In this document: positions 22,700-61,922 of the stretch, one piece after another
Numbering within the stretch: position 1 is the stretch's first letter
Layout: each line of letters begins with the position of its first letter
Assembly (NCBI RefSeq): GCF_023055435.1
Contig: NW_025963791.1
Span: forward strand, 18,910,001 to 18,974,000
Reading direction: 5' to 3'
Source: Haliotis rufescens
Lineage: Eukaryota
DNA: 64,000 nucleotides
The notes under the pieces: generated by a model
What the model was told of the DNA's origin: nothing
Databases searched by the model: none
Seen by the model: only the letters and a program-made list of their open reading frames with translations
Translations under genes and position numbers: made by a program

Positions 22700-23357
22700 T
22701 ATAGCTGGGTAAGGAGAGGTAAGATGTATGGTGGTAGTGGACGGGTGGGACAGGGTGGATATAAAGGAGAGGTAAGATTCCAGGGTGGTATAGCTGGGTA
22801 AGGAGAGGTAAGATGTCAGGATGGTATAGCTGGGTAAGGAGAGGTAAGATGCCAGGGTGGTATAGCTGGGTAAGGAGAGGTAAGACGTCAGGGTGGTATA
22901 GCTGGGTAAGGAGAGGTAAGATGTCAGGGTGGTATAGCTGGGTAAGGAGAGGTAAGACGTCAGGGTGGTATAGCTGGGTAAGGAGAGGTAAGATGTCAGG
23001 GTGGTATAGCTGGGTAAGGAGAGGTAAGATGCCAGGGTGGAATAGCTGGGTAAGGAGAGGTAAGACGTCAGGGTGGTATAGCTGGGTAAGGAGAGGTAAG
23101 ATGTCAGGGTGGTATAGCTGGGTAAGGAGAGGTAAGACGTCAGGGTGGTATAGCTGGGTAAGGAGAGGTAAGATGTCAGGGTGGTATAGCTGGGTAAGGA
23201 GAGGTAAGATGCCAGGGTGGAATAGCTGGGTAAGGAGAGGTAAGATGTCAGGGTGGTATAGCTGGGTAAGGAGAGGTAAGATGCCAGGGTGGAATAGCTG
23301 GGTAAGGAGAGGTAAGATGTCAGGGTGGTATAGCTGTGTAAGGAGAGGTAAGATGTA
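22700..23357. repeat. 36-bp purine-rich minisatellite, ~16-17 copies
   Basis: Unit gtcagggtggtatagctgggtaaggagaggtaagat; source of the 12-aa periodic ORFs on both strands. Confidence 0.97.
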
Positions 23358-24557
23358 GGGTTGAGGTGGACGGGTGGGTCAGGGTGGTGGTGGTCATACG
23401 CCGACCCAGGGGAGCAGGTGTTGTGGACGCGAATCTTGACTAGGGCAAACCTAGTGGAGTGATAGGGTATGGTTGGGGCTTGTGCTTTGGGAGGAAGTGT
23501 GAGTATGTAGTCTCGACAAGCATCGACCCCATCACAGCATAACGTCAAATACAAAGGCTTTCAGCTTGAGACCTTTTCAGCAAATTATGTTAAAATAATA
23601 ATGAAATCACCTTTCATGTATTGAGATCACCCCCCTCCCCCCCCCCCCCCCCCCCCACACACACCCACCCCCCACCCACCCCACCCCACCCCTGCGTGCA
23701 CATATAGCATCTTGTACCTTCGTAATAGCCATCCACACATACATTAGACAAAATAAATCAGATTAGTTGAAAGCATTCAAGTTTCAAGCACACGCCCCAA
23801 AACAACCGAAAGTCATTTCATATGGGCGTTTCTGTCAATGTCAATGAAGCATTCTCCGACGGCTTATTAGAGCACTTGCTTTTCATTTCAGCCCTAATAT
23901 ATGCATACGTGCCCTAACAACCATGACTGCAAACATGCATCACACTTCATGTAGAACATCTTGATCAGGCAAGGGTAGGCGAGGGATATGACATGTTCTA
24001 GTATACTGACTTTAGTTTTGGTACATTTTAACACAATGATGTCTAGTAATAACAACTAACCAACAACAAATAATAACAAACAATATATATAATTTATTAA
24101 AAAGGTATGGCTCACGGTCGTTTGATCCCGGTCAATGAATCAGTATACATTCGCTTTTCATTCTCAGCTCCCTAGGGATCATATAGCTCAAGCTGAATGT
24201 GAGTCGCTAGGTTCACAGTCTCATTTTCATCCCATCCTACCGGGTACCCATTCACGGCTTGGTAGACAGAGGCATATTTCGAACAGTCACTTGCATAAGA
24301 AGACACCACATGTGCTACATAATATTCTTTGTGTTTGCCGTAAAAGGTTGCCGTGCTTCGGTGGAATAAGAGGGACTTTTGTATCATTGTGTCATGTGCT
24401 ATCTGTACACCTGTACATAGTTACAACACAGTACACAGTTGAGCCACTGCATGTCCTGATACACAGTAATAGTGTAACGGCTGCTTGTCATTTTCACGGC
24501 GTAGACCTTTGTCAGGGAAAGCTTTTAAGCCCTTGTATTCCATTGTAATGTCTGACA

Positions 24558-34275: not shown

Positions 34276-35379
34276 TACAACTGAAACTGATATCGTGATA
34301 CTGTAACTGAACATTGTCAGTTACTTCAACCTGACCATTCCGCTGATGTTGTAGGGACAGCGCGACAGCACTACACAAGAGCATATCTGTACATGGTGCT
34401 GTGTAACAACTGACAGCAATATACCCACGTGTGTTCTTGCATAGCGTGTATAAGCTGTGCTGTAAGGGTGCTTGCTACCTTTGTAACATACTCCGTTGTA
34501 AGACCCGTGTGCACTGAACATAATTTATTTGAAAGAATGATCGTGTCTGGTGTTCCGTGACGGACAACAAAACAAGAAACAAAATTAGCAGTAAGGAACC
34601 TGTGCCTGGCAGGACAATTCAAATTTAAATTTATTCAACGCTTCGACCAACAATTACGCCACAGAAACTGGATGTTCAGTTTTACGACAAAACGGCTGAC
34701 ATGTTTATAACGCCAATGTGTACATTAACAAAGAGAAATTACATAGATATAAATAAACGTGCATGTGGGCATACCACAGTGAGCTGGTATTCATTTAGAC
34801 AGTGGTGGTTCCTGGATATATTAAATGTATTGGTGATCACTGGTCGAGAATTAAGAGTGTCGCAGGGTGTAAAATATGAAACTTGGGATAAATCAGAGAC
34901 ACCGGAACGTGTACTTCTATGAATAACGCTGTTCTGATCAATAAAACCCGAAATGATGATGCAGGTCTTAGACGTTTACCACTTGGGTGAGATCCATGGG
35001 TATGGTGCTGACAAAGAAACATAATCCAACCGCGATTCGAACCCATGATCTGATCAAATAAAGTTGACTGTATAACATTGTTTGGTTTCAAAAAGACTTG
35101 AGACCCCATAGGGATCTGGGAGCAGTGCGGCACCTCAGCACGTATATTCGAGTCTCCGTTGGGTACCGGATGAGAGGTCCCCGGTACTTCACGTTTATCA
35201 AAAGAGCCCACTAAGGTGGTAATTGGTAGTCAGGATGATAGTTTGTCATTGTACCGAGACGCCAAGGATCGTCGTAATCAACCACGTGTGTCGAGGCCCG
35301 TGAAGATGCGGGGTAGAATAGCTGCAGACTTGTTTCATTAATAACGACACAACAGCCGTGGTAACAGCTCATCGACGCG

Positions 35380-36065
35380 TACCATGGGGAAATAGTTTCG
35401 TTGTATACCATGGGGAAATAGTTTCGTTGCGTACCATGGGGAAACAGTTTCGTTGTATATCATGGGGAAACAGTTTCGTTGCGTACCATGGGGAAACAGT
35501 TTCGTTGTATACCATGGGGAAACAGTTTCGTTGTATACCATGGGGAAATAGTTTCGTTGTATACCATGGGGAAACAGTTTCGTTGTGTACCATGGGGAAA
35601 CAGTTTTGTAGTGTACCATGGGAAACAATCTAAGTGTGGACCACGGGGAAACAGTCTTGTTGTGTACAATAGCTAAATAGTTTCGTTGTATACCATGGGG
35701 AAACAATTTCGTTGTGTACCATGGGGAAACAGTTTCGTTGTATACCATGGGAAAACAGTTTCGTTGTGTACCGTGGGGAAAGTTTCGTTGTGTAGCATGG
35801 GGAAACAGTTTCGTTGTGTACCATGGGGAAATAGTTTCGTTGTGTACCATGGGGAAATAGTTTTGTAGTGTACCATGGGAAACAATCTAAGTGTGGACCA
35901 CGGGGAAACAGTCTCGTTGTGTACCATAGCTAAATAGTTTCGTTGTTTACCATGGGGAAACGGTTTCGTTGTGTACCATGGGGAAATAGTTTCGTTGTGT
36001 ACAACGAGGAAACAGTTTCGTTGTGTACAACGAGGAAACAGTTTCGTTGTGGACAATGGGGAAAT
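35380..36065. repeat. 26-bp minisatellite, ~26 copies
   Basis: Unit taccatggggaaacagtttcgttgtg. Confidence 0.97.
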
Positions 36066-37339
36066 AGTCAGATCTTGACATGGCAACAGAAGCAGGGAAA
36101 CTGTGTAGAACCCAACTCTAATACCTTGCAGTTGGACATCCATTATCGGTTTTCACTTTAAAACTCCACATACATTAACAATACGGGCTATACGACCTTG
36201 AAACTTGGTCAACCCAACACTGTTTTCCCCTCCAAGGTGGGACATGGTGTGCGCTTTTCAAGCAGGATGCTATAGTTAAATAAGTTTTACATTTGACGCT
36301 GTAAACCGTACACAAATTTCGTAAACTACCATTACAAAAGCTTGCAAATGTTTGCCCATTCTTAGTGGGTCAACGGCTAATGTTGACACACCCGTACCCA
36401 GGCTAACCCAATTCGTTCCAGCTATTCAGCAAAAGCCCATCTGTTGTCGATATCACAGATACCAGGCAGAATGTCGTAACATATATGTCAATTACTTCAA
36501 AATACATTGGGTCTAATGACCGTGGCCCGTAGTCCTGAGCAGAGAGGCCCCAGGCTAATATAGATTAACAACATTCAACACATACGTTTGGACCAGTTTG
36601 CAATATATATATCTGTGGTATGGTGATGTCGTTATAGGGATATCTGTCGAGGCTGATATGGGTCAAAAGTCCACGTTTATTGATAGCTCGTGTGTAAATG
36701 AACCCCGTGTTATAAACGAGGTGTTGCACATATGTTGTATAAATGGTTTAACTTCCTAGATGCCTGGTCGTAATACATTTCATATGACAGGTGAAGTTTG
36801 ACATGTGTCATAAGCTACGTCTAATCAACGAGCAAAACAGAAGTTCATTATTGATTTTCATTTCCTATTATTTCACATACGTTTTATACAAAATGTATTT
36901 TTTCTTTTGGAGAAGAAGAAAAAGACCCAGGATACAAAAAAAGGATGATTGATTTTTCTTTAAACACCCCGCAGTGTTATATACAGTAAATAATCGTCTG
37001 ATTTGGTGATGGCGATTCATATGAAGTAACGGTATTAAATATTGCTAATATTATTTTAATAGTACATATGTACATACTGATTTATAACTTAGATATGAAA
37101 CTAAACCGCTTAATGATCACAGGAGGTAGCAGATGGCTGACATAACAAACCCTTGGGCTACACACAGGCTTGCTTCAGTGTACGTGTAATGACAGCATTT
37201 ACCTCTCAGTGAAAGAAATCGCTAGACCACAACCGCAAAGCCGGGGTCTAAAACGTCACCTGAAGCTACCTAGCTATCTACTTGATAGTTAAAACACCTG
37301 GGTGGTTAAAATGTCCTGCGTTCAAAATAGTCCACTCAC

Positions 37340-43592: not shown

Positions 43593-43727
43593 CTAGTCAC
43601 TGCTGGGCTGCACCTGTGCCAGGTACTCTGCATATGTTATACTGGGACCATGCTTGGCCGGATCATAGAACTTCTTCTGGATAAACTTCCTTCCCGAGTA
43701 GCCGCACACGCCAAATTCATTCTTATC
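43593..43727 (-). CDS. NDUFS6: NDUFS6 exon 4 (terminal)
   Basis: TTGCAG|DKNEFGVCGYSGRKFIQKKFYDPAKHGPSITYAEYLAQVQPSSD-TAG; AATAAA on the minus strand at 43482-43487. Confidence 0.9.
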   Translation of the reverse strand, partial: DKNEFGVCGYSGRKFIQKKFYDPAKHGPSITYAEYLAQVQPSSD

Positions 43728-44290
43728 CTGCAAAAATATAAAGACTTACCATATAGTGGATTGTGTAATATAACCCAATCTAACCACCATCCAAAAATTA
43801 TGCAAATGAAAAACATTTGATAGGTTCTTTCCAATGTATGAGTGCTTATGGCAAACAAATATGGCTGTAAATAATTTGGAATTATATTATACATGGGGTG
43901 TTCCATTGAGATATTGTATTCCTACAGTTACTGTATGATAAAAATTATATACAATTCATGTTCTAACACTGCAAAAAGGCAACAGTAACAGTAACTCCTA
44001 ATGTGCTATACAGTAACCAGTACCTATGACACACATACAGTGTCCGAAAAGAACTGCTTGCCAGCCTGCCTGTGGCTTGCAACCTTTCTGCCAGGCTGCA
44101 TGGAATCTTCCTCAACCTTTCTGGCAGATAATATTAAGACTATTTACATATTCAGTTTTATTATAACTCCTTGTAGGTTCTCAAGTAATTGTTTGTGTTA
44201 TTTCAACTGAATCAAGATGTGAATTACCTCTTATTTCTGGTGGCGATCTTTCAATATTAATAATGTCTGAATGAGGGCAGGTTAGTTTGA

Positions 44291-44570
44291 GTGTGTGAGT
44301 GAGTTGGGTTTAACGCCGCTTTTAACATTATTCCAGTTATATCACGGCGTGTCAGCTTAATGTGGGAGGAAAGCCCGAAGTGATGCAGGTCTCGGACGTT
44401 TACCACTTCGGTGAAACCCACGAGCACGGGTATGGTGCTGACAAACCTAGAAACATAATCGGGGCGAACCGGGATTCGAACCCACAATCATAGGTTTCTG
44501 GGGTGCCCAAGGGACGCAACTCTGCACAGCGAATTGCGGCGCCTTAGACGACTGGGCCACCCGTGCCCCC
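44291..44570 (-). mobile_element. SINE family D, full length, in NDUFS6 intron 3
   Basis: 13-bp TSD caggttagtttga (44278-44290 and 44571-44583); A box TGGCCCAGTCGT, B box GGTTCGAATCCC. Confidence 0.92.
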
Positions 44571-45520
44571 CAGGTTAGTTTGAAGATGGTTAGGCAACAC
44601 TTATGGGTCAGTCACCTGCACGACCGTATTTTGGGGTTTTAAACATATTTCAAACATTGCACACAAAACCAATGAAGTAGATAGTTCCAAGGTTTCACTG
44701 GCCCACATAAAAATGGACCAGAAATATCACAAATAATGTTTTCAAGAGTCTATGTAGAAACTGGGAATGACCAATAAAGGTCTATTAAATACTTCCGACT
44801 TTATTTCATTTCCTGCATTGAAGTATTTCTCACAATCTTGCCACCAATACCACAAAATAACGTGAACTCAAATTCACTCAATGTTCCCATGACAGCAAGT
44901 CAAATCACCCCTTCTTGTAGTGTAAGTGTGAGCGAATGTTGTCTTTCATCACACTGTTCCAACTTATGAACTATATCATGAAACCTGGTACATCGTTAGT
45001 TGGGGCAAGCAAACCATAGGTTGATAGCATGAGCTACTATACAGGTTTGTGATGACAGATGCCATGCCAGGGGCGTGACAAAGACGTCAGACCAACATAG
45101 CCCACTTGCACAGACATTTTAGCCCTAAGACTATCGTAAGCCTATGTTAAAGTATGGGAGTTACGATCATCTTAGCAGTAGGATTGCTTTGTGCAAGTGG
45201 GTCCCAGTCTATTCTGCCCAGTTATCCCAATATGATTACAAGAAATATAACATGAGAAGAATATGCTCTTTGTTTTTCGTTAACACTGTACTGTGCTATA
45301 TTCCAGCAGCCTGTAAGTAATCAAATCTGGACCAGACAAACCAGTGAATATTATTATAATGCCTCATACCATCGGGGCACGATGACACAAAATCAAACAA
45401 GACATCAAGAATGACCACACGCTCCATTTAGTCGCCTCTTATAACAAACATAGATTGCTGGGGACCTATTCTAACCTTGAATCCCTAATATGAGAATAAC
45501 TAAAGACCAGAAACACAGAC

Positions 45521-45640
45521 CAGGTTAATGTAGACCTTGGGGTGTCCCAGTGCTCCACCACTGTCGCTCCACACATTGCGTGCCTCCACCACCACTACAG
45601 GATCTTCCGCTATCAGGTTCACAGCGAACTGCTCATTCAC
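45521..45640 (-). CDS. NDUFS6: NDUFS6 exon 3
   Basis: TTCCAG|[40 protein letters not shown]|GT; [13 protein letters not shown] is the NDUFS6 signature; 120 nt. Confidence 0.95.
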
Positions 45641-46147
45641 CTGGAAATATACACAGAGAAGTGCACCACTCAACACTTAACATGCTAAATAGGACAGATT
45701 TTCAAAATGACCTCAACAATTCTATTAATATTCAATTTTAGATAGCTATGCGATACATTGTAAAGAACAATAAAGAACAAAGCATGGTTTATTTCACTAT
45801 AAAACATTGTGACCGCATGACCATCATGACCTCATTGCTACAGATTCAAATATGCGCTTGCAACTTGATGACGCCATATATTGGATGACGTTATTTTTGA
45901 GAGGGAAGTATCTGGTAAGTTGTTCCCCATAGGTGTAGTTGCACCACGTGTATAACACAGTGGCCGTACAATCGCATCCCAAAGTGGGAGAGATTTGACA
46001 ATTGGTATTAGGAGAAAAGGTACAGATAATCGACGTGAGGATTGTGAGAATATGCAGGAAATACCAAACATAATCCCCCTGTTGGTAATATGGACTTGTC
46101 TGACATGTCCGAGGTCAGATTCTATTCAGGGGGGCTGTACATAATTG

Positions 46148-46292
46148 TAAGGAAGAAACGACTCGTGGTCGTTGTTTATCATACAAAAAAACACTGCAGG
46201 GAGAATAAACAACTGAGGGCTGTGCCCCTCATGGTTTATTCTCCCTGCAGTGTTTCAATGTACAATAAACGCTCCCCCTCGTCGTTTACTTA
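46148..46292. mobile_element. Foldback/hairpin element in NDUFS6 intron 2
   Basis: aaacactgcagggagaataaac ... gtttattctccctgcagtgttt perfect 22-bp inverted arms, with looser outer pairing. Confidence 0.7.
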
Positions 46293-46664
46293 TGAATTAA
46301 AGAGAAAAATGTTGAAGATATACATATGGATATGCTATAAAATGTTCAAATACTATTTGTATCTCACAAAATGACACTACAAATCATCATGATACGGATA
46401 AATGCCATGCACCAATCGACAGTTTGATCAGTTTCAGCCACTTGAGAAAGATTTCATTGTTTCATTCTATATTTCTACCATACCATATTCTTTACCTTTT
46501 TTTCTTTTCAACAGTAAGCTTTTTAACTGTGTATCACCGATCACATGCTCAATGTATTGTAATCAGCAAGATCAGTTTATATCAGCAAGAGTGTAGCATA
46601 AGGTACAACATCATGCTAAGTGTCAACTCACAGAAATTAAATGTTTGATTTTTCTCTATCTTAC

Positions 46665-46718
46665 CATCTTGTCCTTGTCAACAAATCTCACACGCCGGTA
46701 GTCTCCCCTTTCCCATAC
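46665..46718 (-). CDS. NDUFS6: NDUFS6 exon 2
   Basis: TTTCAG|VWERGDYRRVRFVDKDKM|GTAAG; matches the conserved DYRRxRF motif; 54 nt. Confidence 0.93.
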
Positions 46719-47986
46719 CTGAAACATACAACACTGTCTTGAACAAAAACATGGCTAAATATGCTCAAGGAACGGTCTTAAACATATCCGTACCACAAAC
46801 AAATCTAAACCATATCAATCTGAGTGAGTGAGTTAAAGTTTAACGTCACATCGGCAATATTTTAGCCATATCGTGACGAATATCAATCTGAAGAATGATG
46901 AATACACTGACATTATTGCAGACATACTGACACAATACATGTAATCACTGATGCAAGAATCTTCGGTGAATGCATATTGTGTTAAAACAATGGGAAAATT
47001 TGTACTAGCCTGCAGCAATTTGTACCTAGCCGCGGGTTAGACGGCTAGTGTTAAAGGAACAGCACATCAACGGTTGTGTTAGTTACCAAATCATGCATGA
47101 AATAATTTCTGAGTGTGATGTCACATGCCTGGTTCAATTCTCATTCCAAAACAATAGAGCGATGTGCAGAGTAAACTGGCTTCAGTCTTGTTTTTTAATA
47201 GAGGCAAATCGAAGAGAAAGCTTGTGTATGTTTTTTTTATGTCTGAGTTACAAAACTACTAAATGTCAGCTTGTAACATGTGTAAGTGCCAGTGTGTATT
47301 GAAGCCCAGGTTACAATTAAAATATGCTTTGGTCGTATGAAGCCAATCACTTTCCTACCCAGAGTTCAGTGTGGCCAGGAGGGGTTATTGGCTAGTTTAC
47401 AAACAAAACTTCAGAACGGTTGACGTCCTGTCCCTCTAAGTTCTAACCCTGACAGTGCAACATCCCATGACACTGGTGTAGGATGATGACAGAACAATCA
47501 CCCAGATCACCTAAAAGCTGACTGGTGATTCAATTAAAAACTCCCTCTACAGAATGAGGTTGGAGGGTCATATTCTATTGGGTAACCACTGACAGCATTT
47601 AGTTCCTGTGTGGAGAATTTCAGCTCTAGTACCTACTTTATTCCAAGGACAATGTAAATATTTCAATCAGGTTTTTTACATAGAAGTTTGTGTAAACATG
47701 TATTTCGCTGAGAAACAGCTAGAAATTAAAAACCTAGCAAATACCATGTTTACAGGCTTAGTTTTAGCTATACATTCTCATTTAATTATATCTATGTATA
47801 TATGTTGGAGTTGAACATGTGTGAATGCACGTATACGTTAATACGCTAAATGTTAAAAGGTTATAAACTAAAATCAGAATATATAAACTGAACAGTGACA
47901 TTCTCGAACCCAGTTCACCTGACTTGTTACTGGAACGTTTGCATTCTCACAAATGAATATCTAAGATCATATCGTATTCATTATAC

Positions 47987-48109
47987 CTGTCCTGTGTGTG
48001 TTTTTTCATCCACGTGAGACTGAGATCCGAGAGTTTTTGGAGTGGATGAGAATGCCCGACAAACGATTTGTCGACCGACATTCAGTCCTGCCCTTGACAA
48101 GGCAGCCAT
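47987..48109 (-). CDS. NDUFS6: NADH:ubiquinone oxidoreductase subunit S6, exon 1 (mitochondrial presequence)
   Basis: MAALSRAGLNVGRQIVCRAFSSTPKTLGSQSHVDEKTHTGQ|GTATAA: Arg/Ser-rich presequence and the conserved THTGQ motif; 41 codons, phase 0. Confidence 0.92.
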
Positions 48110-48957
48110 TTTGAATGCAGTCAAACGAAGGGGAGTAACTCTGATTTCTTAATGTACACGTATTTTGTTCATCCGAGCAAGCCAATGTAATCTCAGGTTC
48201 GAATCGGGTGACAACAAAAGAGCAAGCGCAATATTTTATGGTACATTTTTGTATGGGGTGTGTAAAACAATAAAAGTAGATAAGCATACGGATATTTACA
48301 ATGTTTATCAAAGTTCAAATGTACCATTCAATGTTCTTAGCGATTGTATTTTCATATCGGTGCTGCTAGAAATGTGAAGATTCAGACCACCACGCTCTGT
48401 TGTCGTCTGCATTAATAGCTCAATTTAGGCCTTTTCATATTATATTTGAAGCAGAAATACATATCCTGGCTGAACAGGCCCAATGCAGACGTTTACTTAC
48501 TTAGCAATATGTTCATTTAGCACATTTACATGCACTAGTTGAAGGGAAGATTCACAGAATCATATTTGCTTGCTTGATGTTTAACGCCGCACTCGATACT
48601 ATTCCAGATATTGCCATGACTGAAGGACGTCTGTAAATAGCCAGGTCAGGACTAGACAATAAGTGATTGATATTAGGAGCAATAACCCACACCGTGTTGG
48701 CATAGTGACACACAATCAACCATATCCCTTTCGTTACCTCGCACAGCAAACAAAATAATGTAAGTAGCTGGGGATCCATCTAATCTGGAATCTCCACGGG
48801 GCCATTACCACAAGAACTATCTCGCCACCCTGATGTTCCACGACCAACTGTATAATCTCTTGTATTGTATGTATTGTCATGGTTGTAGGTGTAGGATATG
48901 CAGTATTGTGTCGTGTACATGATGTAATATGTTTAGTGACACTGTTTATCTAATATG

Positions 48958-50337: not shown

Positions 50338-51548
50338 TATACGCCTCTATTATACGCCTTAGCAAATGCTTAGCACTCCTAAATTGAAAACTATATATTG
50401 ACAATATGTCATGATTAGGCTGCGACACCTGAGTGGAATATTTCTAAAAGCGGCGTAAAACCCGATTCACTCACTCCTAGAAATTCGTGTGACGTTGGAC
50501 GCCTGACGGAAGTGTTTGAAAACGTTATATGAGTTGTTGACCAGGCGTCTGTCATCTTGAAATGAAAACAAAAGACCACCATGGTATTATGCTTCAGAAG
50601 TTAATTTTCAAAAAAGCCTTATGAGATAAACGATTTGGTAAGATTTTTTTCAGTGTTTACAACATAAAAATGAAATAGTTCACATGCAATAAGGTAGTTG
50701 GTGTTTAAGTGAGTGAAAGCTGTTTAACGCCAATATCAGTCATATCACGGCGGTCTGTAAGTATTCGAGTGTGGACAGGACGAACCAGTGATTGAAAGTT
50801 TGAGCAACACTCCACGCCAGCGGGGGTCACGATGACCAGCTACATGGCATGCAACAGAACCTGTCCATCTGATCATGGACAGCATGAAGCACCGAGGGCA
50901 TTTTCTGACCAGGAATCCCCACAGGGTGGATGGTCCTTAATCTCTCCTTATATGTTTATTACTTCAATGTACTGGCGGTGCACTGTGCCTTCTAATGCCA
51001 CTCTGTGACATTCAATGTCAACCATCATCAATATTTCACGGAGTTACATAGTGTAAACAAACCTGTAAAGTAATAACGATGACATATAACCCGAACCTCA
51101 TAATTCTTTACTCAAACTAGTGAAACAGTTCAATTTTAAGGTTTCAATATTCAATTCTATATTCAGATAAATAAAAATGGACTAAGCCATTTTCATAATC
51201 AAAAGAAATCTCTGCTATAAGCAGAGTCCATTGTATAATTCTGACCATTGTTTTCATCACAAGCATGTGTTTATACCAGGTGTTCGCGAAAAGGTGAGCC
51301 TATCCTGTCCACCGGTTGCACACTCGACACAAACACATGCAAAGGTAAGTCAATTGTCCGCCTGGAAAGACACGGAAACACCTGGTACAAATCAAAATAA
51401 GGAATTGCATCGAACATAATTTTTGTCACTGATGCGACACATTTGGAAATATCCTCCACGTCTTCCGTAACACTTTTTGAAAGCTTTACTCACGCCTGAA
51501 ATGTTGCAGCCAAATGTATTCAAACCTTGTTTCATTACCATCATCTCA

Positions 51549-52088
51549 TTATCCAATGATAGCTCCCCCGCAATTAAACCGGATATTGCTGGTGGTGTGG
51601 GCATCGATATGAAAGTCTGCTTGAGCTGCGCTGGAGATGCATTTGCCGCCAATCTTGAAGTTGTTGAACTGCCAGTTGGTGACTCTGGCTCCAGAATTCC
51701 CTGCTATTTCGTTATGGAGACTGTCGTGGCCAGGCTGGGAGTCCACAGACAGGTTTATAATGTGGACGTTGGAAGCCGTCCCCGATGCCCCGTTGGCCAT
51801 CTTCCAATACACAATACGTGGACAAGACCCTTCTACCCTAATGTTGGTGAAGACGATATCACTCATGGCGAAATGCTTTGTGTTACCAGCCAGGTCGAAG
51901 ACTGCGTCGTTGTCGCTGATGTGACAGTTGGAACCTTTGAAAGTGCACCAGTCGGTGTGAATGACGTCGATGTCACTGATCCTGACTTTCTTCATATCTC
52001 TGCCGCTCCACCATCCGTTCTGGAAGACAGCCCCGTTCTGCATCTGCCAGATGACGACCCTCCGTGCCACCATGTTGTCTGTATATAC
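51549..52088 (-). CDS. GH49 gene A exon 2 (spliced product 483 aa)
   Basis: TTCAG acceptor; VYTDNMVARRVVIWQMQNGAVFQNGWW...ISDIDVIHTDW beta-helix repeats; ends FNCGGAIIG-TAA. Confidence 0.88.
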   Translation of the reverse strand, partial: VYTDNMVARRVVIWQMQNGAVFQNGWWSGRDMKKVRISDIDVIHTDWCTFKGSNCHISDNDAVFDLAGNTKHFAMSDIVFTNIRVEGSCPRIVYWKMANGASGTASNVHIINLSVDSQPGHDSLHNEIAGNSGARVTNWQFNNFKIGGKCISSAAQADFHIDAHTTSNIRFNCGGAIIG

Positions 52089-52244
52089 CTGAATACAATA
52101 AGCACGCTCCAGTTTGGTTTCTAAATTACTCGAATGGGAGTTACATTTGCCACACCATCCCATGTTCTAGATTATTTGTTGGGTGTAATTGAAATTAATT
52201 GAAGATAGGGGAAACCCTGGTCATCCTGACAGTGCCTATCCTTG

Positions 52245-53075
52245 TAAAACCCATTTCACCTGTCGCTACTGTTCCCAGTAAAACCATGTTTCTTCACCAG
52301 TACCGATCCCAGTAAAACCATCCTTGTCCGTCATTATTTTTCCCAGTGAAACCCTGTTCACCCATCAGTACTTTTCTTAGTAAAAACGTGTTCACCTGTC
52401 GTTATTTTCCCAGTAAAACAATCTTCACATGTCGTTTATTTTCCCAGTAAAACCCTGTTTATCTGTCTTTTTTTCCCCCAGTACGTCCCCTCTTGACCTG
52501 TCGTTTATTTACCCAGTAAAACCCTTTTCACCTGTCGTTTATTTTCCCAGTAAATCCATGTTGACCTGTCGTTTATTTTTCCCAGTACGTCCCCTCTTCA
52601 CCTGTCATTTATTTCCCAGTAAAACCCAGTTCACCTGTCGCTACTGTTCTCAGTAACCCATGTTTATTCACCAGTACCGATCCCAGTGAAACCCTGTTCA
52701 CCCGTCAGTACTTTTCCCAGTAAAACCATGTTCACCTGGCGTTTATTTTCCCAGTTAAACCCATGTTCTCCTTTCGTTTATTTCCATAGTAAAACCCTGT
52801 TCACCTTACGTTTATTTTCAAAAAAAAACCCTGTTCACCTGTCGTTTATTATCCCAGTAAAACCCTGTTCACCTGTCGTTTATTTTCACAGTAAAACCCT
52901 GTTGACCTGTCGTTTATTTTTCCATTAAAAAGCTTTTTACCTGTCGTTTATTTACCCAGTAAAACCCTTTTCACCTGTCGTTTATTTTCCCAGTAAAACC
53001 AGGTTCACTTGGTGAGTACTTTTAACAGAAAACCCATGTTGATCCGTCAGTACTGTTTCAAGTAAAACCCTGTTT
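52245..53075. repeat. ~34-bp degenerate minisatellite filling the GH49-A intron
   Basis: cccagtaaaaccctgttcacctgtcgtttatttt-like units. Confidence 0.92.
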
Positions 53076-53333
53076 ATCTATACGTTAAAATATCGACTTC
53101 ACCAATCATCGCTACAAAATAGATATTTAATATTATGTAAAAGTTTCTCACACTACTTCATAATTCTGAGTCTCCAGACTATCACATATTCCCGAGATTG
53201 TTTGATTTTGATAACAGAACACGATTTGCATTATGTGAGAGAGACACCTATCAACGCCCCTTCGGTATTGCCAATGCTAATTTACTGCTCAAGCAGAGAT
53301 CCAAGAAATGTCGACATAACAAAAATCACAAAC

Positions 53334-54245
53334 CTTCAGGGCATCATCGTTTGCCGAGATGAAGCAGTCCTCGACCAGTCCATCATGACCAATACCAATA
53401 CCATCGGAATTATAGGCCCACGACCCAACCATCTTCACATCACGGACGGTATTGTGATCGCTCAGTCCGCGGTAGAAGTATTTCACAGGATCAACCATAA
53501 TGATACCCTCAACTACGTGAGAATGTCCCTTATCAATGTCGATCATGGCCCACTGAAATCTTGGATCGTGCCACGTGTATGTAGCAGTGGAGAGTATTCC
53601 TCTGCCATAGATCTTCACTGGTTGATTCCCGGTGGTCTTAAATCCTCCTTGAACATACGCCCCTGGTGCTAAATATACTTCTTTTATGTGAGAATCCAAT
53701 TGTTTTGGGCCATGCAGATTGTGTATCCCTACGTCATAATACAGAACAGAGTTGTCGTTCTTGTTTGGCTTATGTGTCTCAGGCGGATCTGCGAACACAA
53801 GGAGCCTGTCTGTTATGTCTGGGCCTCCATCACTGCTGCCGTAGTCATAGTCAAATTCTACGGACATCCACTTCTTGGTGTTGGACACGGTGAATTGGGC
53901 AACCTTGGTTCCTGTTCTGCGGCAGTGGTAGGTGTAGCTCTTGGGTCTGACGATGCAGTTGTGGAAGTCGCGCTGGGTGTGGACCTCCACTGTCACGGCA
54001 CCGCCAGTGAAGGAAAACGACGTGAACGACATCGATCGTCCTGGGTGTGCAGATGATGTTTCGTGGGAACGTTTGTCAGAGGTGGTAATGTAAGTGAAAC
54101 TGTCATGTTTTCTTCCACCTTGACTCACATACACCTTGAATTTGTTGGAAGCTGGGGGACCACTGGCGTGTGGGTATATGATGACGTTTCCCGTCGCCTC
54201 GTTGGCGAGGATGACGAGAACGACCCAAACACAGAGACCGACCAT
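53334..54245 (-). CDS. GH49 (dextranase/isopullulanase-like) secreted glycoside hydrolase, gene A exon 1
   Basis: Signal peptide MVGLCVWVVLVILANEATG. Motifs MSVEF, LLVFADP, VYLAPGAYVQG, GRGILS, YNSDG and FISANDDALK parallel fungal Dex49A (VYLAPGAYVKG, GHGILS, QTDG, NDDAIK catalytic Asps). 304 codons, then a GT donor at phase 0. Confidence 0.88.
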
Positions 54246-55466
54246 GCTGTGGCGGCACCGGCTGACTGTGGCACTAATAACTTAATATGAATCGGCAGAG
54301 ATTGTGACGCATGAGACCCATCCCTTCTAATCAGTGCAACCATAACATTTTTTCACTTATTCAAAACATATTGTCTCTACATTCTGTAGAGATAAAAAGA
54401 AACATCTGGTACTTTGCTCTATCTGTCTGATAAACGGAACTTTTTCTATTCAAATATAGTTACTGTCTCGACTGTCACGTGGTACGTGAGGGTGGTCTAA
54501 TTTTGGAAGAAAGTACCCATACATCACTGATACCCAAGTGAAATGAATAAACAAACACATCGATTATTGAGTCATATCAATATGTAATATTCAAAAAGCA
54601 GGATATCGGAATAAGAATGTGAACTCAGGTGCACGTGCACGACCAAGGTTTCGAAGTAGGTTTCGGATAGTTAACAAGTCAAAGTCAAAGTGACCACCAT
54701 TTGCAAAGACATTTGCCTGGCAATGACTCCGAATAAGGACAAAACAGAGAATTCAGGAAGCCTCGGGGACGTCATTCCAGATTTGCCTGCTGCAGCTTGG
54801 CCAACATCACACGACTTCGAAGACGGTGAAAACGTCGTTTCAATTCATCCCACACGTTCTATGACGACTTTAAAACAGCAAATCCCATACCGCTAGCTAC
54901 ATTAATAAGAATGTTATATGCACGTCCGGTTTAATGTCATCACCGTGTGGCCTTGATTTTGAATGAAGGCCTCTTAAAACCAAGCAGAGTCGATGCCCCA
55001 CACTAAGGAAGGTATTTACTAAATTTGATCGGACTGAAATAAACTCTAGATAGTTGTTGAGTTATTATGAAAATTGTTCATTTTTGAGTGTACGACATTG
55101 AGCGTGAATCCGACCTTCCAAACTCAATGACAAGTATTTCAAGAACATTCCTGAGGGCAATATAGCAACGTATGTAAATACAGCACATGCTGCATGACCT
55201 CAACATAACCTACTACTGTTATCATAAGATTGTTAACAGTCAATTCCTTGTCGAGTTAAGATATAAACAAACTGTTTTCAGGCTGACCTTGGAGACGACC
55301 TTGACCATCAACTTGGCTCATCAAGACCTATTCTACCCCGGATCTTCACGGGCCTGCTACAACATATTTTATCAATAGGCGAGTGTGCCTGATTAAAAAC
55401 CCCTTAGGTATTTGCCTTTAGATCATGATAAAGTCATCTTGTTATCATATATATCATTTTTTTCAG

Positions 55467-56000
55467 GTGTTCCATACCGGCTTGATTATCAGGCGAACAG
55501 TCGTGTGGCAGATGCAGTTCGGAGCCATCTTCCAGTTGGGATGGTGGAAGTCCAGGAACGTTCATGACATCCGGGTCTCCGACGTGGACATTATACATAT
55601 GGATTGGTGCGCGTACAAGGGAGATAACTGTCATCTTCAGCCTAATGCTGCTGTCTTCACGGTGTCCGGCCACACCCACGAGTTTCACGTTGATGACATC
55701 ATTCTCAAGGAGATCCGAATTGAGGGAGAATGTCCGAGACTGGTAGAGCGGAAACTCTACAACGGAGCTGTGGGAAAAGTTAGCAATCTGCGTTTCGAGA
55801 ACAACTATGTTGGATCCGTATCGAGCAGCATGCATAACATTATAGCAGGCACACCAGGAGCTCATATCCAGAACTGGCAGTTTATCAATCTCCGGTATGG
55901 CGGCCACTGTGTCTGTAACGCAGGTGCAGGGCACTTTTCGGTTGACTCGCATACGACACACAACAACTTTGTATGCGGTACTGGTCCTATCATTGGATGA
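55467..56000 (+). CDS. GH49 orphan exon 2 (copy C): intact, no same-strand exon 1 upstream in the window
   Basis: TTTTTTTCAG acceptor at the homologous position; VFHTGLIIRRTVVWQMQFGAIFQLGWW...VSDVDIIHMDWC; 177 uninterrupted codons ending FVCGTGPIIG-TGA. Confidence 0.75.
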   Translation: MFHTGLIIRRTVVWQMQFGAIFQLGWWKSRNVHDIRVSDVDIIHMDWCAYKGDNCHLQPNAAVFTVSGHTHEFHVDDIILKEIRIEGECPRLVERKLYNGAVGKVSNLRFENNYVGSVSSSMHNIIAGTPGAHIQNWQFINLRYGGHCVCNAGAGHFSVDSHTTHNNFVCGTGPIIG

Positions 56001-57106
56001 TATTAATGGAAAGTACACACTGTCGTTTAAAACATCAAAACACACTGGAATATTTGCAAAAGTCGCAAAAGCAGAGCCACTGTACAATTCCGCATGTGTT
56101 ATGAATCGATATTAATAGTGATGATACCACGCGTGGCACCCGTCACTAACACATGGAAAGACAAGTCAGTTGTTCATCTGAACAAAACAGGGTAATATAT
56201 GGTACAGGTCAAAATATGGACATTAAGTTTGTCACTAATACGTCACATTTGGAAATATTCTCCACATGTATACCATAAAACTTTTTGAAAACTTTGCTGA
56301 GGCTTTGAATGCTGACACCGAATAAAAATTGTTTACCAAGAGTCGTAAGACGCTCTTTAAAGGATGGACATTAAGGGAAAGTTGACCATTGGAAAGTTGA
56401 AGTCATCCCTCTTGTCATACATTCTTGTGGATAGTTTTGTGTCACTCAGAACAGTTACGCATAGATCTAAATATGAAAGAGATGAGGCGGTTTCACTGGC
56501 TCCCTTTATTTCTAGTTCAGGTGGGTAAATCGGTGGTGGGAACAGGCTAAATGATGGCTATTGAGCGATATCAGATCGCCGATATACCTGAAGCTAAGAT
56601 AATCATCTTGGCCAGATTCCCTTGTTTTGACGTTTCCAATCCGAGCAGAAATTCCGATTCATATGTATAAAGATGGGGAGCACAAACGTTGCCCATGTGT
56701 TAGTGAGGGAGTTATAATTTAACGTCGCATAGGAATTATTTCAGCCATATAGCGACGAGAAGAAGTTGATATATACACAAGTGAGTCATGAATGAATACA
56801 CAGTTCTATTTAAAACCAAATTTGTCAAACATATTTGGGCAAGACAATATTATCTATAAAGTTGCAAACATCGGCGATAGGCTACCAGTAACCAATGGTT
56901 CCCATGGGATGCCGACCTCTGTCATGTTAGGCTTCATGACTAAAATCATGTTATGAGTGATGATATTTTCCGCATTAACATGGAAATGAAACACCTTTTA
57001 ACCCGTTATTCTTTATAAACTGTAATGTAACACTCTGGTATGACTTCTGCATTATAGTATACAGAAGAATATATTGAGCCACATCACTTATACGGTCCTA
57101 CTATAA

Positions 57107-57270
57107 GTGAGTGAGTGAGTATGGTTTTACGCCGCTTTTAGCAATATTCCCGCAATATCACGGCGGGGGACACAAGACATGGGCTTCACACATTGTACCC
57201 ACGTCGAGAATCGAACCTGGGTCTTCGGCGTGACGATCGAACACTTTAACCACTAGGCTATCCGACCGCC
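57107..57270 (-). mobile_element. SINE family A
   Basis: Matches family A; ggtccta on both sides. Confidence 0.88.
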
Positions 57271-57837
57271 AGGTCCTAAGACATAAAGATGAACAGTAAT
57301 GTCCGGTTTACTACAGACTGCCATCAGAGAGAACACAGATACAACCGTTAAGGCCACAGTGATTAGGGTTGAGATATAGGATACTAGAGCAAGGGCAGGC
57401 CAGACTGAAGGTCAGGGTAGATCTTGGGTTGTGATCACTACGGACAGAAGGTTGTACGTTCGTCGTCTCAGCCATCACAGATGACTAAACTATAGTTATT
57501 GTTTGTAGCGAGTGCGTATTCTCAGCAATATTCCAGCTGTGTGACGACGGCCTGTAAATAATGGAGTTTGGTCCAGAGAGTCCAGTGATTGATATTAAGT
57601 GTAATGATCCAAGCTGTCTGGGTACGATGACACAATACAAACCAGTTCACTGAACCTGTCCATACAATCTATTCAGTCGCCTTGTACGACCGTCATAGGT
57701 AACATTTGTGATATTTGGGATAACACTTCCTTAGTGAAGTACAAATTCTAGCACTTTTTGTGGTTGAGTCCCATCCGGAATTCGAACCCAAACTCCCAGA
57801 TTGAGGCACCAATCGCCAGCACACAAAGTCATCCACC

Positions 57838-58103
57838 GAAAACTCAAATGCTTTGACATAATTGAACCTAGTTCTTTTCTGATATTGTAAAAAGTCACGC
57901 AAATCCTTTGAGATTTTGAGAATCCACATGGTATTAATTCCGCTTGTCTCAAACACTTTCTGTGAATGAAAAGAAAGTCCTTCCTTGATTTTATTAAGGA
58001 TTGTGGTTAATCGTTGAGACAGGGATTTGGTGGTACATTTGTTGTACCCAGCAATATACCCCTCTTTGTACGGATCTTTATGGAGCTTTGGAATCCAGTA
58101 CAT
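57838..58103 (-). mobile_element. Penelope-like reverse transcriptase relic
   Basis: YWIPKLHKDPYK...KCTTKSLS...SGINTMWILK.SK...KAFEFS matches the PLE RT N-terminal motifs (PKxHK; up to the DF-S motif). Confidence 0.75.
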
Positions 58104-58574
58104 GTCATGGACATATCTTCAGGTTAAAGAGTCATGTCAAAAGTGGATAGTACCGATGTATGATTTTGGCAGACGAGACTTTTCAGTTGAGACAACGAGC
58201 AATTTCAGTTATGACAGCGTGTGATCCCTCCCAATGCAATGGCTGCTCTTTGTCACACGTTCACGGCTTTGATGTTAGTTATCTACATTTCCGAAACCGT
58301 TTGCGATTTAGATATGTACCCATCCACATCTGGCGTCCCTGGGTCATAACGTCCACGTCGATGCATCACAATTCACTTATATTACAGAGTGAAAGATGCG
58401 TAGTCTGTTAATAATAATAGGACATCGTCTTTCTCAGACAGTTCCGTGACAGTCGAGATCAGAACAAAGACAGAGTTTACAATGCATTGTACGGTAACAG
58501 GTTACATGACAGGGGTCCCATGACAGCCCAAATCGTCACCCAAAGAAACTCCATCAGGATATCAGTGCGACTAT

Positions 58575-58718
58575 GGTTGGTTGGTTGGTTTGTTGTTTAA
58601 CGCCGCACTCAGCAATATTCTAGCTATATGACGACGGTCTGTAAATAATCGAGTCTTGACCAGACAATCCAGTGATTGATATCATGAGCATCGATCGACG
58701 CAATTGGAATATGATGAC
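58575..58718 (-). mobile_element. SINE-like family B, 3' half
   Basis: Matches the family B tail. Confidence 0.75.
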
Positions 58719-59501
58719 AACTGCGACTATAGAAGCAAGGAATCAACCATACGGACTAACTTCTAATATTTGCAGACTGCCGTCAAACATGACATTGTTT
58801 ATACAATGGCAGTGCAGCAGCCAGCATCATTGGCAGCTATTGCCTCAACTGTCTGCTGGATGTGAACACAAGAGAAAGCATGTCGGCTAAGCAACAATTT
58901 GCATGCGCATTTTTCATGATTTGCTCGAACTGCACTATGTGTGAATGTCCAAGGTCATACCACCAGAAATCATTTCTGAACAGGTCGCCAAAACGCATAT
59001 CGACCATTCTCTGTACATTAAAACAGCTTTCAGACTACGGCTAGGTATATGCTAAATTAATGCCCATGGCGACTTTCTTTTGCCTTCCAGTATAGCTAAA
59101 AATGTTGAATCTAAACCAACTCATTCAGTGTTGATATTCTTTGGTTTCAGCGAAGGGAACAACGTTTCTTTTAATAAATGAGAATATTATCCAACCATCC
59201 TAGGATATTGCTTCAACACACACGTCTTCAAATCTAGCAAATATTGACAGTGTGATCTTTGTGTCTTGTTTTCTTCCAGGAGCCCACGAAACATTTTGGC
59301 CGACGAGATATACCCATATGTCTCATATCCTATCAACAGACACAGTACATTTGAGATGTTGAAATGTACGTCATATATGACATGATATATTCGTTATCTG
59401 ATCCTGTCAATATCAAGCAACACGATAACAGCTATCGTGGAGTGTAAACGTTTGATAAATAACATAACAGGTAGCCATTCACCATAGTGTACTAAAACAT
59501 C

Positions 59502-60407
59502 ATGGAAGTGTGTCCAGTCATCTACCTAGTAATGACAATGATGGGCGGATGTATGGCCGAGCTGGTCATATACCCTGCACCTCCGACCATGGAGTCATCA
59601 GATAAGTATGAGGTATTGGTAGGTCTCGGGGATCCATTATTGGGTACCTTCACTTACAAGACGACCTCGAACCACAGACATATCGAGAACCACTACGTCC
59701 ATCCCAACCGGTCCGTGTCCTGGTCGTCTTTTGCATTCAGTCGTGGTCCGGTAATCGTTGAGGTCAGGACGCAGAAGGACTTCAGTCAGTGTCTGGTTCG
59801 CCCGGTAAGTTACAAGTACGCCTGCAGTAGGGTGGGGAACAAGACGGCTAGGTTTACAGTGACTCGGAATTCTACTATGATGTCTGTAGAGTTTGATAAT
59901 GACTACGGCAGTTGGAAGTCCGACATAGTCGACAAGCTGCTGATATTTGCAGAACCTTTGGAGAGAGATGTTCCTTCTAAGAGTGACCCCTCGGTAATGT
60001 TCTTTGACGTCGGTGTGCATTATCTTGACGGTCAAGTCAGATTAAACTCGAGTATAAAAGAAGTTTACATCAGTGCTGGAGCTTTCGTTGATGGAGGGTT
60101 CATCACCACGGACAACACAAAGGTCAAGTTCCATGGAAGAGGGATCTGTTCAGGCCGCAAGTACAAATTTCATGACAAGCGATTTCAGTGGTCGTTGATC
60201 AACACTGCACAAGGCACTAATCACACAATTGAAGGCATAACGTTAAGTGATCCCCAACAGTTTTTCATATTCGCCCAAAGTCCCAACAACATCATTAAAC
60301 AGGTCAAGATGGTGGGCGCCTGGCCTTACAATACTGACGGTATTGAGATGGGCGTTGGTGGTTTGGTGGAGGACGTGTTCATTATGGCCAATGACGACTC
60401 ACTCAAG
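59502..60407 (+). CDS. GH49 gene B exon 1
   Basis: Signal peptide MEVCPVIYLVMTMMGGCMA; colinear paralog of gene A exon 1 with YNTDG and ANDDSLK|GTAATG donor; 302 codons. Confidence 0.88.
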
Positions 60408-60567
60408 GTAATGCCAGACTTTAACCTTTAACAACTCTGTGTGTTTCAGATATGATAGCTTATCAATTATCAATTCATCAATTCCATCTGTATTATTTAT
60501 GTCTTAGTTTCGTTAATAGCTCTAGAGATTAAACATTACTGTAGCCCCTAAAACCATTACAATCTGA

Positions 60568-60830
60568 CCCGTGAAGATCCAGGGTAGAATAGGTCTCCAG
60601 CAACCCGTGTTTGCCGTAAAAGGCGACTATGCTTGTCGTAAGAGGCGACAAACGGGATCTGGTGGAAAGGCTCGCTGACTTGGTTGATGCATGTCACCGT
60701 ATCCCAATTGCGTGGATCGATGCTCATGATGTCAAAAACTGGATTTTCTGGTCCAGACTCGATTATTTACAGACCGCCGTCATATAGCTGGAATATTGCT
60801 GAGTGCGGCGTTAAACAACAAACAAACAAA
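60568..60830 (+). mobile_element. SINE-like family B in the GH49-B intron
   Basis: Full-length match to family B. Confidence 0.88.
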
Positions 60831-61394
60831 CGTTATAATCTAAGTATAATCCAGAATTGGTTTCTTAGGATTAGTTTGAACTCACTCAAAGACCATCGCA
60901 CACTTAGTTATCGATTGCACATGTAAATAAAGCAACACAACCCTTTCCATATCCAATAGAAACCTCCGCATAAAACAGAGTCGATTGTACGATTCCGACT
61001 ACAACATAAGCATGTATTTGTGAATCACTATCAAATAGTAATGATACCAGGTGTTCGCGAAGCGTATCCTGCGGCACCCGTCACCGGTGACACCGGTCAC
61101 AAACACATGCACAGGCAAGTCAATTGTTCACCTGAAAACGACGGGAACATATGGAACAAGTCAAAACAGGGAATTGCATCGGACATCAATTTTGTCACTG
61201 ATGCGTCAAATTTGGAAATGTCCTCCATAAACCTTTTTGAAAGTTTTACTGAATCCTTGAATGTTGTAACGGTGATCAAACAACTTCTGAGCAAGAGTCG
61301 TACGACGCTAAGTCACGTTTTACTTCAGAGATTCCAGTCTTGCTCGATGGTTCCTTGAATATCTGGAACGACTTAATGTTAGTTTTCCTTATAG

Positions 61395-61922
61395 GTGTAC
61401 AACAACGATATGACGATACAGAGAGTGGTCATCTGGCAAATGCAAAATGGTGCCGTATTCCAAACCGGCTGGTGGACGGAACGTGACCTTCACAGAGTCA
61501 GCATCAGCAACATCGACGTCATTCACACGGACTGGTGTACATTCCACGACCCCGACTGTGGTATGCTTAGTAGAAACAATGCAGTGTTCGATCTGGCTGG
61601 AAACGTCAAGGTCATCAACATGTATAATGTGTCGTTTCAAAACATTCGTCTTGAAGGTTTTTGTCCTCGTTTTGTTTTCTGGACCATGCCGGCAGGGATC
61701 AATGGAACTTCATCCAATGTACGATTTATAGATGTCTCGGTTGGTTCACAGCCAAGTAGTGGCCAGCTCATGAATGAAATATCAGGTTATAAACCCAACG
61801 GCTATGTGTCCGATTGGCTATTTGCTAATTTGTCTGTAAGCGGACGATGTATTGCTACACCTAACGCTGGGAGATTCGTAATTGATAATTCAACAACATC
61901 AAATATTAAGTTTTCGTGTTAG
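61395..61922 (+). CDS. GH49 gene B exon 2 (spliced product 477 aa)
   Basis: TTTTCCTTATAG acceptor; VYNNDMTIQRVVIWQMQNGAVFQTGWW...; ends IKFSC-TAG; AATAAA at 62053-62058. Confidence 0.88.
   Translation: MYNNDMTIQRVVIWQMQNGAVFQTGWWTERDLHRVSISNIDVIHTDWCTFHDPDCGMLSRNNAVFDLAGNVKVINMYNVSFQNIRLEGFCPRFVFWTMPAGINGTSSNVRFIDVSVGSQPSSGQLMNEISGYKPNGYVSDWLFANLSVSGRCIATPNAGRFVIDNSTTSNIKFSC

Follow-up and report, generated by a model that had tools for sequence, protein, structure and literature searches.

The red abalone, Haliotis rufescens, carries a cluster of genes for putative secreted enzymes related to glycoside hydrolase family 49 (GH49) within the window, i.e., the whole 64,000-nt stretch analysed here, which is part of an abalone chromosome (G000 contig 13, 18.91-18.97 Mb) and does not contain any N. 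The best overall explanation, which we consider probable and hold with moderate confidence, is that these are nuclear genes of the abalone encoding secreted, distant GH49 enzymes, that they belong to an old mollusc family with an ancient bacterial source, and that their products function in the use of algal or biofilm glycans. GH49 is mainly a bacterial and fungal family and, to our knowledge, this enzyme class has not been described in animals. No paper on GH49 or dextranase in molluscs was found in the literature searched, and mollusc GH49-like genes are already annotated in NCBI as "dextranase-like". It is usually assumed that marine grazers leave unusual algal polysaccharides to their gut microbes, and a GH49-like family that is endogenous, expressed, and present across molluscs would extend the animal repertoire by a new enzyme class.

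Gene Structure and Transcription

Genes A and B are genuine host nuclear genes because their introns contain host repeats, NDUFS6 is located next to them, and spliced contigs were found in four studies; gene A is both spliced and transcribed. Open reading frames (ORFs) and tblastn searches agreed with an earlier reading made from the DNA letters alone (the sequence-only reading), which had described two intact two-exon genes of 483 (A) and 477 amino acids (B) plus a third exon 2, and its coordinates were correct. Exon 1 of gene A encodes a signal peptide (identified by eye), the N-terminal beta-sandwich, and the beginning of the beta-helix, where the catalytic Asp residues are located. The product of gene B is 100% identical to P0001, the NCBI protein "dextranase-like [Haliotis rufescens]". 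Full-length analyses used P0001, which corresponds to the two exons of gene B, and the exons were otherwise searched singly; in the trees, gene A was represented by exon 1 alone. As had been noted from the DNA alone, the introns are GT-AG and contain host repeats, and the acidic motifs N(S/T)DG and NDDxLK are intact in both genes. The repeats are a 34-bp satellite in A and an interspersed repeat in B, and both introns are located directly after the NDDxLK motif. NDUFS6, which had been placed ~3.4 kb away, was confirmed by its exons on the minus strand (43593-48124), with the 5' end of NDUFS6 3.4 kb from the stop codon of gene A.

Contigs from four public runs (four studies and three organisms; guessed to be RNA) were mapped to the window. 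In all four, a single contig of 1.4-1.9 kb joined position 52086/8 to position 53332/4, which corresponds to the exons of gene A as modelled. The skipped 1245 nt (52087/9-53331/3) read CT..AC on the plus strand, i.e., GT..AG on the minus strand, and the depth inside was zero; the four runs were read as RNA-type because DNA would keep intron A. Among the coding variants of gene A that were listed (35 of ~75 differences), 17 were synonymous and 18 were non-synonymous, compared with 22% synonymous expected at random when transition bias is ignored (p 4e-4), a rough sign that gene A may be under purifying selection.

The red abalone contained in total three intact genes (A, B, and a third paralogue, D), one orphan exon 2 (copy C), and two or more copies that are decayed, all of which were located on contig 13. 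Genes A, B, and D share the intron position. The earlier proposal of intron gain and family expansion was supported.

Assignment to a Divergent GH49 Branch

Genes A, B, and D are predicted to encode members of a divergent, distant GH49 branch that has kept all three catalytic Asp residues, because of their fold, their profile match, and the catalytic Asp triad. Pfam matches of the single exons were weak. The model of the N-terminal domain, PF17433 (Glyco_hydro_49N), matched gene B with 29.7 bits (cut-off 21.3), and the H. rubra protein P0004 was also above the cut-off, while PF18783 (IPU_b_solenoid) remained below its cut-off of 30.2 with 20-26 bits. A profile built from 24 members of the clade and compared with solved chains matched dextranase 6nzs (3e-58), isopullulanase 1wmr (7e-57), and Dex49A 1ogm (4e-43), with almost full-length alignments to the latter two; the next family followed at 0.003. 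The AlphaFold2 model of P0001 (predicted local distance difference test, pLDDT, 92; predicted template modelling score, pTM, 0.91) has an N-terminal immunoglobulin-like beta-sandwich followed by a right-handed parallel beta-helix, which is the GH49 architecture. In a Foldseek search of the PDB, the top seven matches were all GH49 with template modelling (TM) scores of 0.75-0.79, and the next were GH28 at ~0.46 at most. GH49 was thus the best match of both profile and structure, in line with the sequence-only reading.

The catalytic Asp motifs NSDG/NDDALK (A), NTDG/NDDSLK (B), and NSDG/ADDANIK (D) align to QTDG and (N/T)DD of 6nzs and 1wmr. The spacing from the Asp of N(S/T)DG to the Asp pair is 19-20 residues, which is the same as in isopullulanase and dextranase, and D279 and D298 are nearly invariant across the clade; the corresponding catalytic residues of isopullulanase are D353, D372, and D373. 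By analogy with solved GH49 enzymes, the products of A, B, and D should be inverting endo-glycanases.

The solved GH49 enzymes, i.e., isopullulanase of Aspergillus niger (1wmr and 3wwg), Dex49A of Penicillium (1ogm), and AoDex of Arthrobacter (6nzs), have in common with the abalone proteins the beta-sandwich and beta-helix and the three aligned catalytic Asp residues (profile E 1e-43 to 1e-58). In contrast, the abalone proteins are only 20-24% identical to them and ~70-110 residues shorter, they are encoded by animal genes with an intron, and their substrate is probably not an alpha-glucan. Furthermore, the bacterial homologues have the same conserved (L/V)xxYP start after their own leader, and the products of A and B would be secreted.

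Distribution and Phylogeny

The named animal homologues found in protein searches and in the Atlas cluster were all molluscs, namely four Haliotis species, Patella vulgata, P. caerulea, Lottia gigantea, Littorina saxatilis, Batillaria attramentaria, the chiton Liolophura sinensis, and the pearl oyster Pinctada imbricata. The P. imbricata protein (P0037, 776 amino acids) has NDDAIK at positions 298 and 542 and probably represents two tandem copies fused by annotation. In the Patella caerulea models and in several genomic ORFs, the last codon encodes V (GTN) and is located a few residues beyond NDDS(L/I)K. Other genomic ORFs begin shortly ahead of the exon-2 sequence, following a Q codon. Both patterns fit an intron at the position found in the abalone genes.

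A phmmer search against 1.84 billion representatives yielded 1826 matches. Among the closest non-mollusc matches (35-40% identity) were those from two choanoflagellates (Salpingoeca urceolata and Stephanoeca diplocostata), from the diplonemid Artemidia motanka, and from environmental assemblies. Protist sequences were 35-46% identical, whereas named bacteria (among them Planctomycetia, Micromonosporaceae, Opitutales, Bacteroidota, and Alteromonas) reached 23-34%, with 32% at the best-scoring locus. At least two environmental subclades of the eukaryote group include eukaryotic genomic DNA, judging from their gene structure. A seawater contig (L157) contained a canonical GT..AG intron at a position other than that of the mollusc intron; in contig L103 the match was split into three pieces, with gaps of ~260 and ~195 nt compatible with GT..AG. 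Contig L095 contained a single ORF without bacterial-style neighbours. The mollusc intron was absent from L095 and L157.

The main tree was inferred with IQ-TREE under LG+G4 from 76 rows, and a reduced tree from 49 rows. In the 76-row tree, the molluscs, together with three rows without a taxon label, formed one clade (100/99), and all eukaryote-type rows were separated from all named bacteria (100/100). The mollusc genes form one clade within a "eukaryote-type" group that also includes choanoflagellate, diplonemid, and environmental protist genes, and this group is related to a large set of distant GH49 proteins, most of which are bacterial. The view that the family lies outside the common animal repertoire was retained in that molluscs were the only named animals; the restriction to an abalone or gastropod event was not, as chiton, gastropods, and bivalve fell in one clade. 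The orthologue of gene A was H. rubra P0203 (88% identity), and that of gene B was H. asinina P0002. The paralogue lineages of molluscs were deep (~50% diverged) and mixed the classes, and therefore stem from old duplications. Stephanoeca grouped with the diplonemid, apart from Salpingoeca, so that the two choanoflagellate sequences were not each other's kin.

A search with PF03718 for canonical GH49 outgroups found none in five bacterial genomes and 14 control genomes; P0227, the canonical GH49 sequence used as outgroup, came from a protein search. In the tree rooted with P0227, the eukaryote group was nested within bacteria, with values of 98 and 92 in the Shimodaira-Hasegawa-like approximate likelihood ratio test (SH-aLRT). 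With regard to the expectation that a phylogeny would place the genes within a microbial clade, the nesting was recovered, but the non-nested alternative was not rejected (p-AU 0.41), and no bacterial or fungal donor emerged.

Origin of the Mollusc Genes

An old transfer from a bacterium to a eukaryote, followed by spread among marine eukaryotes, is the favoured origin of the family, and we regard it as likely, not proven. It is favoured because of the huge bacterial diversity of the family, its narrow and patchy range in eukaryotes, and a choanoflagellate/diplonemid topology that departs from the species tree. The mollusc stem lineage already possessed the gene. A bacterial gene would have entered eukaryotes long ago, and a copy may have come to stem molluscs through transfer from a protist or through descent. 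The mollusc gene would then have acquired a single phase-0 intron immediately behind the catalytic strand with NDDxLK, and would have been duplicated before the living mollusc classes split. This is thus an animal carbohydrate-active enzyme (CAZyme) of microbial type whose history is older and more closely linked to eukaryotes than first proposed.

Other animal CAZymes of patchy, transfer-like distribution are comparable, such as the GH45 cellulases of molluscs and the GH13_1 amylases: these also belong to families typical of microbes and, in a marine grazer, are integrated, intron-bearing, expressed, and expanded. The distribution of GH13_1 amylases among animals is patchy and transfer-like (PMC7003070). 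In these cases, which concern other families, as in GH49, it is difficult to tell old transfer from retention of an ancestral gene with losses. With choanoflagellates carrying the nearest relatives, the GH49-like genes represent a clean test case for ancient transfer versus ancestral retention.

Predicted Substrate and Role

The only characterised distant GH49 enzymes are the sulfated-arabinan hydrolases of Bacteroides plebeius. These GH49_dist enzymes (EDY96541.1 and EDY96565.1) are endo-acting on a green-algal cell-wall polysaccharide, and cleave the sulfated arabinan of Chaetomorpha and Cladophora but not dextran or pullulan (Helbert et al., 2019; PMC6442616). Such a substrate fits the diet of a grazer and the sulfatase neighbourhoods described below; the B. 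plebeius enzymes were compared with the abalone genes by description only, and named Bacteroidota relatives were at most ~32% identical (mostly 23-29%) and fell outside the eukaryote group.

A homologue of S1 sulfatases was encoded within ~3 kb of the distant-GH49 gene in 41 of 80 bacterial genome loci from several phyla, and within 6 kb or less in 33 of 80 metagenome loci, both counts being given without a control frequency. The sulfatase-adjoining loci (L013, L024, and 39 others within L009-L088) belonged to Actinomycetota, Verrucomicrobiota, Bacteroidota, and Planctomycetota. Members of the distant-GH49 subfamily may in general act on sulfated glycans. No sulfatase gene was found in the window. 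Given the strong link of the bacterial relatives to sulfatases and the cleavage of sulfated arabinan by the characterised distant GH49 enzymes, the substrate of the abalone enzymes would more plausibly be a sulfated algal glycan than dextran, and "dextranase-like" in NCBI is a family label only. The likely role would be the extracellular breakdown of algal or biofilm polysaccharides.

A more far-reaching reading is put forward tentatively, as one that may well prove wrong: the phylum Mollusca would own an ancient, eukaryote-type branch of GH49, shared with choanoflagellates and diplonemids and related to the sulfatase-linked enzymes of bacteria, whose members are endo-acting on a sulfated glycan of algae or biofilms (e.g., green-algal sulfated arabinan). 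If true, no GH49 enzyme would have been known from an animal before, the specificity would be one described to date in a single gut bacterium, and the enzymes would form part of an endogenous toolkit for digesting seaweed. They would also be candidates for the activity behind old biochemical reports of algal-glycan degradation by the digestive juice of limpets and abalone, and GH49-like enzymes could serve as tools for sulfated algal glycans.

Alternative Explanations

Several points weigh against the account given above. The core Pfam model of the family, PF03718 (Glyco_hydro_49), gave 17-20 bits, below its cut-off of 27, as was likewise the case for the bacterial relatives. Secretion of the products of A and B was called by eye, from a hydrophobic N-terminus that immediately precedes the conserved (L/V)xxYP start. 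The sulfatase link comes from bacterial proteins that are just ~23-34% identical to the mollusc ones, and lacks a control frequency. No non-mollusc animal was present among the named database matches, a result that rests on hit names and annotated proteins and not on genome-wide tblastn. The choanoflagellate and diplonemid sequences came from transcriptomes of cultures that contained prey. The rooted tree was a quick search under LG+G4 with a single long branch, P0227, as outgroup, and a root between the eukaryote and bacterial groups was not rejected by the approximately unbiased (AU) test (p-AU 0.41). Finally, the 49-row tree placed the molluscs next to Salpingoeca urceolata and P0041 with weak support (83/64), a position that vertical descent predicts as well.

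Vertical descent, in which the gene was present in the choanoflagellate-animal ancestor, kept in molluscs, and lost in all other sampled animals, is the alternative that survives best, and we consider it unlikely but worth serious attention. The sister position of Salpingoeca urceolata and P0041 argues for it, as does the presence of the family in a second choanoflagellate, and forcing the molluscs together with both choanoflagellates cost 38 log-likelihood units and was only marginally rejected (p-AU 0.044, for a group chosen after the tree had been seen). The sequence-only reading had taken broad presence across Metazoa and Holozoa as evidence against transfer; kin were found in choanoflagellates, but the family was not broadly distributed across Metazoa. 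Vertical descent would require about ten independent losses (in sponges, ctenophores, cnidarians, deuterostomes, ecdysozoans, and several spiralian phyla), and there was no named non-mollusc animal among the matches. It also has to account for the separate positions of the two choanoflagellate sequences, with Stephanoeca next to the diplonemid, and for the missing mollusc intron in the two readable environmental eukaryote relatives, L095 and L157. An old transfer from bacteria into eukaryotes remains the favoured origin.

With regard to substrate, A, B, and D could be true alpha-glucanases (dextranase or isopullulanase) that act on the alpha-1,6-glucans of biofilms, which we judge to be rather improbable. 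In favour of this, all solved relatives are dextranases or isopullulanases and the catalytic triad is conserved. However, identity to the solved enzymes is low (20-24%), the whole subfamily falls below the core Pfam cut-off, bacterial members are linked to sulfatases, and distant GH49 enzymes cut sulfated arabinan and neither dextran nor pullulan (PMC6442616). A sulfated algal glycan is thus still the better guess.

That abalone or gastropods recently received the gene directly from a bacterium or fungus is highly improbable. It would agree with a family that is mainly bacterial and fungal, and Verrucomicrobia-like proteins were listed right after the molluscs in the first protein search. On the other hand, chiton, limpets, caenogastropods, and a bivalve are united in one clade with paralogues that are already ~50% diverged, protists (35-46%) are closer than any named bacterium (23-34%), and the intron position is common to deep paralogues and Patella. 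The direct acquisition of the gene by abalone from a bacterium or fungus, a narrow reading of the first proposal, was accordingly abandoned, as the clade is mollusc-wide and its nearest non-mollusc kin are eukaryotic. Contamination or an assembly artefact, for which no support was found and which had already been thought unlikely, is of negligible probability given the spliceosomal introns with host repeats, the animal housekeeping gene 3.4 kb away, the 45.7-Mb contig, the spliced transcripts in four studies, and the orthologues in at least ten mollusc assemblies.

Further Copies and Neighbouring Sequences

The coordinates of all features are listed in Table 1. The intact paralogue D encodes a signal-like N-terminus and the motifs NSDG and ADDANIK, with ADD instead of NDD, and has a GT-AG intron of 345 nt at the position of introns A and B. 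Decayed copies were located at 20.866 Mb and 25.365 Mb of contig 13.

Table 1. Positions of the GH49-like genes, their motifs, and associated elements (window coordinates, except for gene D).
Feature	Position	Strand	Description and evidence
Gene A exon 1	54245..53334	-	304 codons, donor GT at 53333-53332; ORF and tblastn, PDB GH49 matches, spliced RNA-type contigs (4 runs)
Gene A NSDG motif	53400-53411	-	First catalytic Asp; aligns to xTDG of solved GH49 enzymes
Gene A NDDALK motif	53334-53351	-	Catalytic Asp pair; final codons of exon 1
Gene A intron	52089..53333	-	1245 nt, GT-AG, phase 0; sequence and exact skipping by contigs in 4/4 runs
34-bp tandem repeat in intron A	52338-53008		~20 copies; Tandem Repeats Finder
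Gene A exon 2	52088..51549	-	179 codons and stop, acceptor AG; C-terminal beta-helix coils; ORF, tblastn, RNA-type contigs; Pfam IPU_b_solenoid and Glyco_hydro_49 below their cut-offs
Gene A 3' untranslated region, minimum extent	51228..51548	-	Spliced contigs extend to 51228-51299
Copy C, orphan exon 2	55467..56000	+	Intact 177-codon frame, CAG acceptor; ORF and tblastn
Possible badly decayed exon-1 relic (weak)	58239..58790	+	Collinear tblastn segments, best E 0.006; profile E 0.24 and 4.2
Gene B exon 1	59502..60407	+	302 codons; ORF, tblastn; P0001 residues 1-302
Gene B NTDG motif	60330-60341	+	
Gene B NDDSLK motif	60390-60407	+	Final codons of exon 1
Gene B intron	60408..61394	+	987 nt, GT-AG, phase 0; same position as intron A
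Interspersed host repeat in intron B	60563-60836		~270 bp; recurs at least 8 times elsewhere in the window, 83-91% identity
Gene B exon 2	61395..61922	+	175 codons and stop; ORF, tblastn; P0001 residues 303-477
Gene D, third intact paralogue	G000:C13:25361852-25363621		25.3618-25.3636 Mb, same chromosome as A and B (L003, L090)

Copy C, for which NCBI models a protein of 162 amino acids (P0170), is read as a transcribed remnant. It is 47-49% identical to exon 2 of gene A and lacks exon 1, and therefore any catalytic residue; no exon 1 for it was found in the window, and tblastn and profile searches gave nothing significant at 54246-55466. The possible exon-1 relic is located downstream of C. 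The reading of C and exon 2 of gene A as alternative cassettes was rejected: C is on the strand opposite to exon 1 of gene A, and all four spliced contigs join that exon only to 52088. It was covered by low-depth contigs only, and in one run indels of -4, -2, -5, +1, and +3 break its frame. In run X1, low-depth contigs were continuous over 54510-55139 (+), the spacer between the 5' end of gene A and C, which suggests that C belongs to a divergent or read-through transcript.

The summed contig depth reached hundreds to thousands in all four runs at 55140-55533, 51200-51400, and 56320-56900, and many contig joints connected 51.3 kb with 56.1-56.6 kb. These high-depth stretches, which flank the 3' end of gene A and C, are highly expressed or high-copy repeats. 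An element of ~320 bp with ~70% identity was present at 51187-51506, 56133-56354, and 60941-61309, the last of which is located within intron B.

A Rfam scan of 51-62.5 kb found nothing relevant. An ORF of 136 amino acids between C and B (57693-58103, minus strand) starts with the reverse-transcriptase-like "YWIPKLHK" and is probably a decayed retroelement. The neighbouring NDUFS6 comprises at least three exons (in the regions of 48124, 45676, and 43733), in which SDSGG stands in place of the conserved CDGGGG.. stretch and CGYSG in place of the C-terminal CGYCG. Long tandem repeats at 14127-15104, 22697-23554, and 35338-36143 contain repeat-peptide frames of 155-285 amino acids, which are satellites and not genes.

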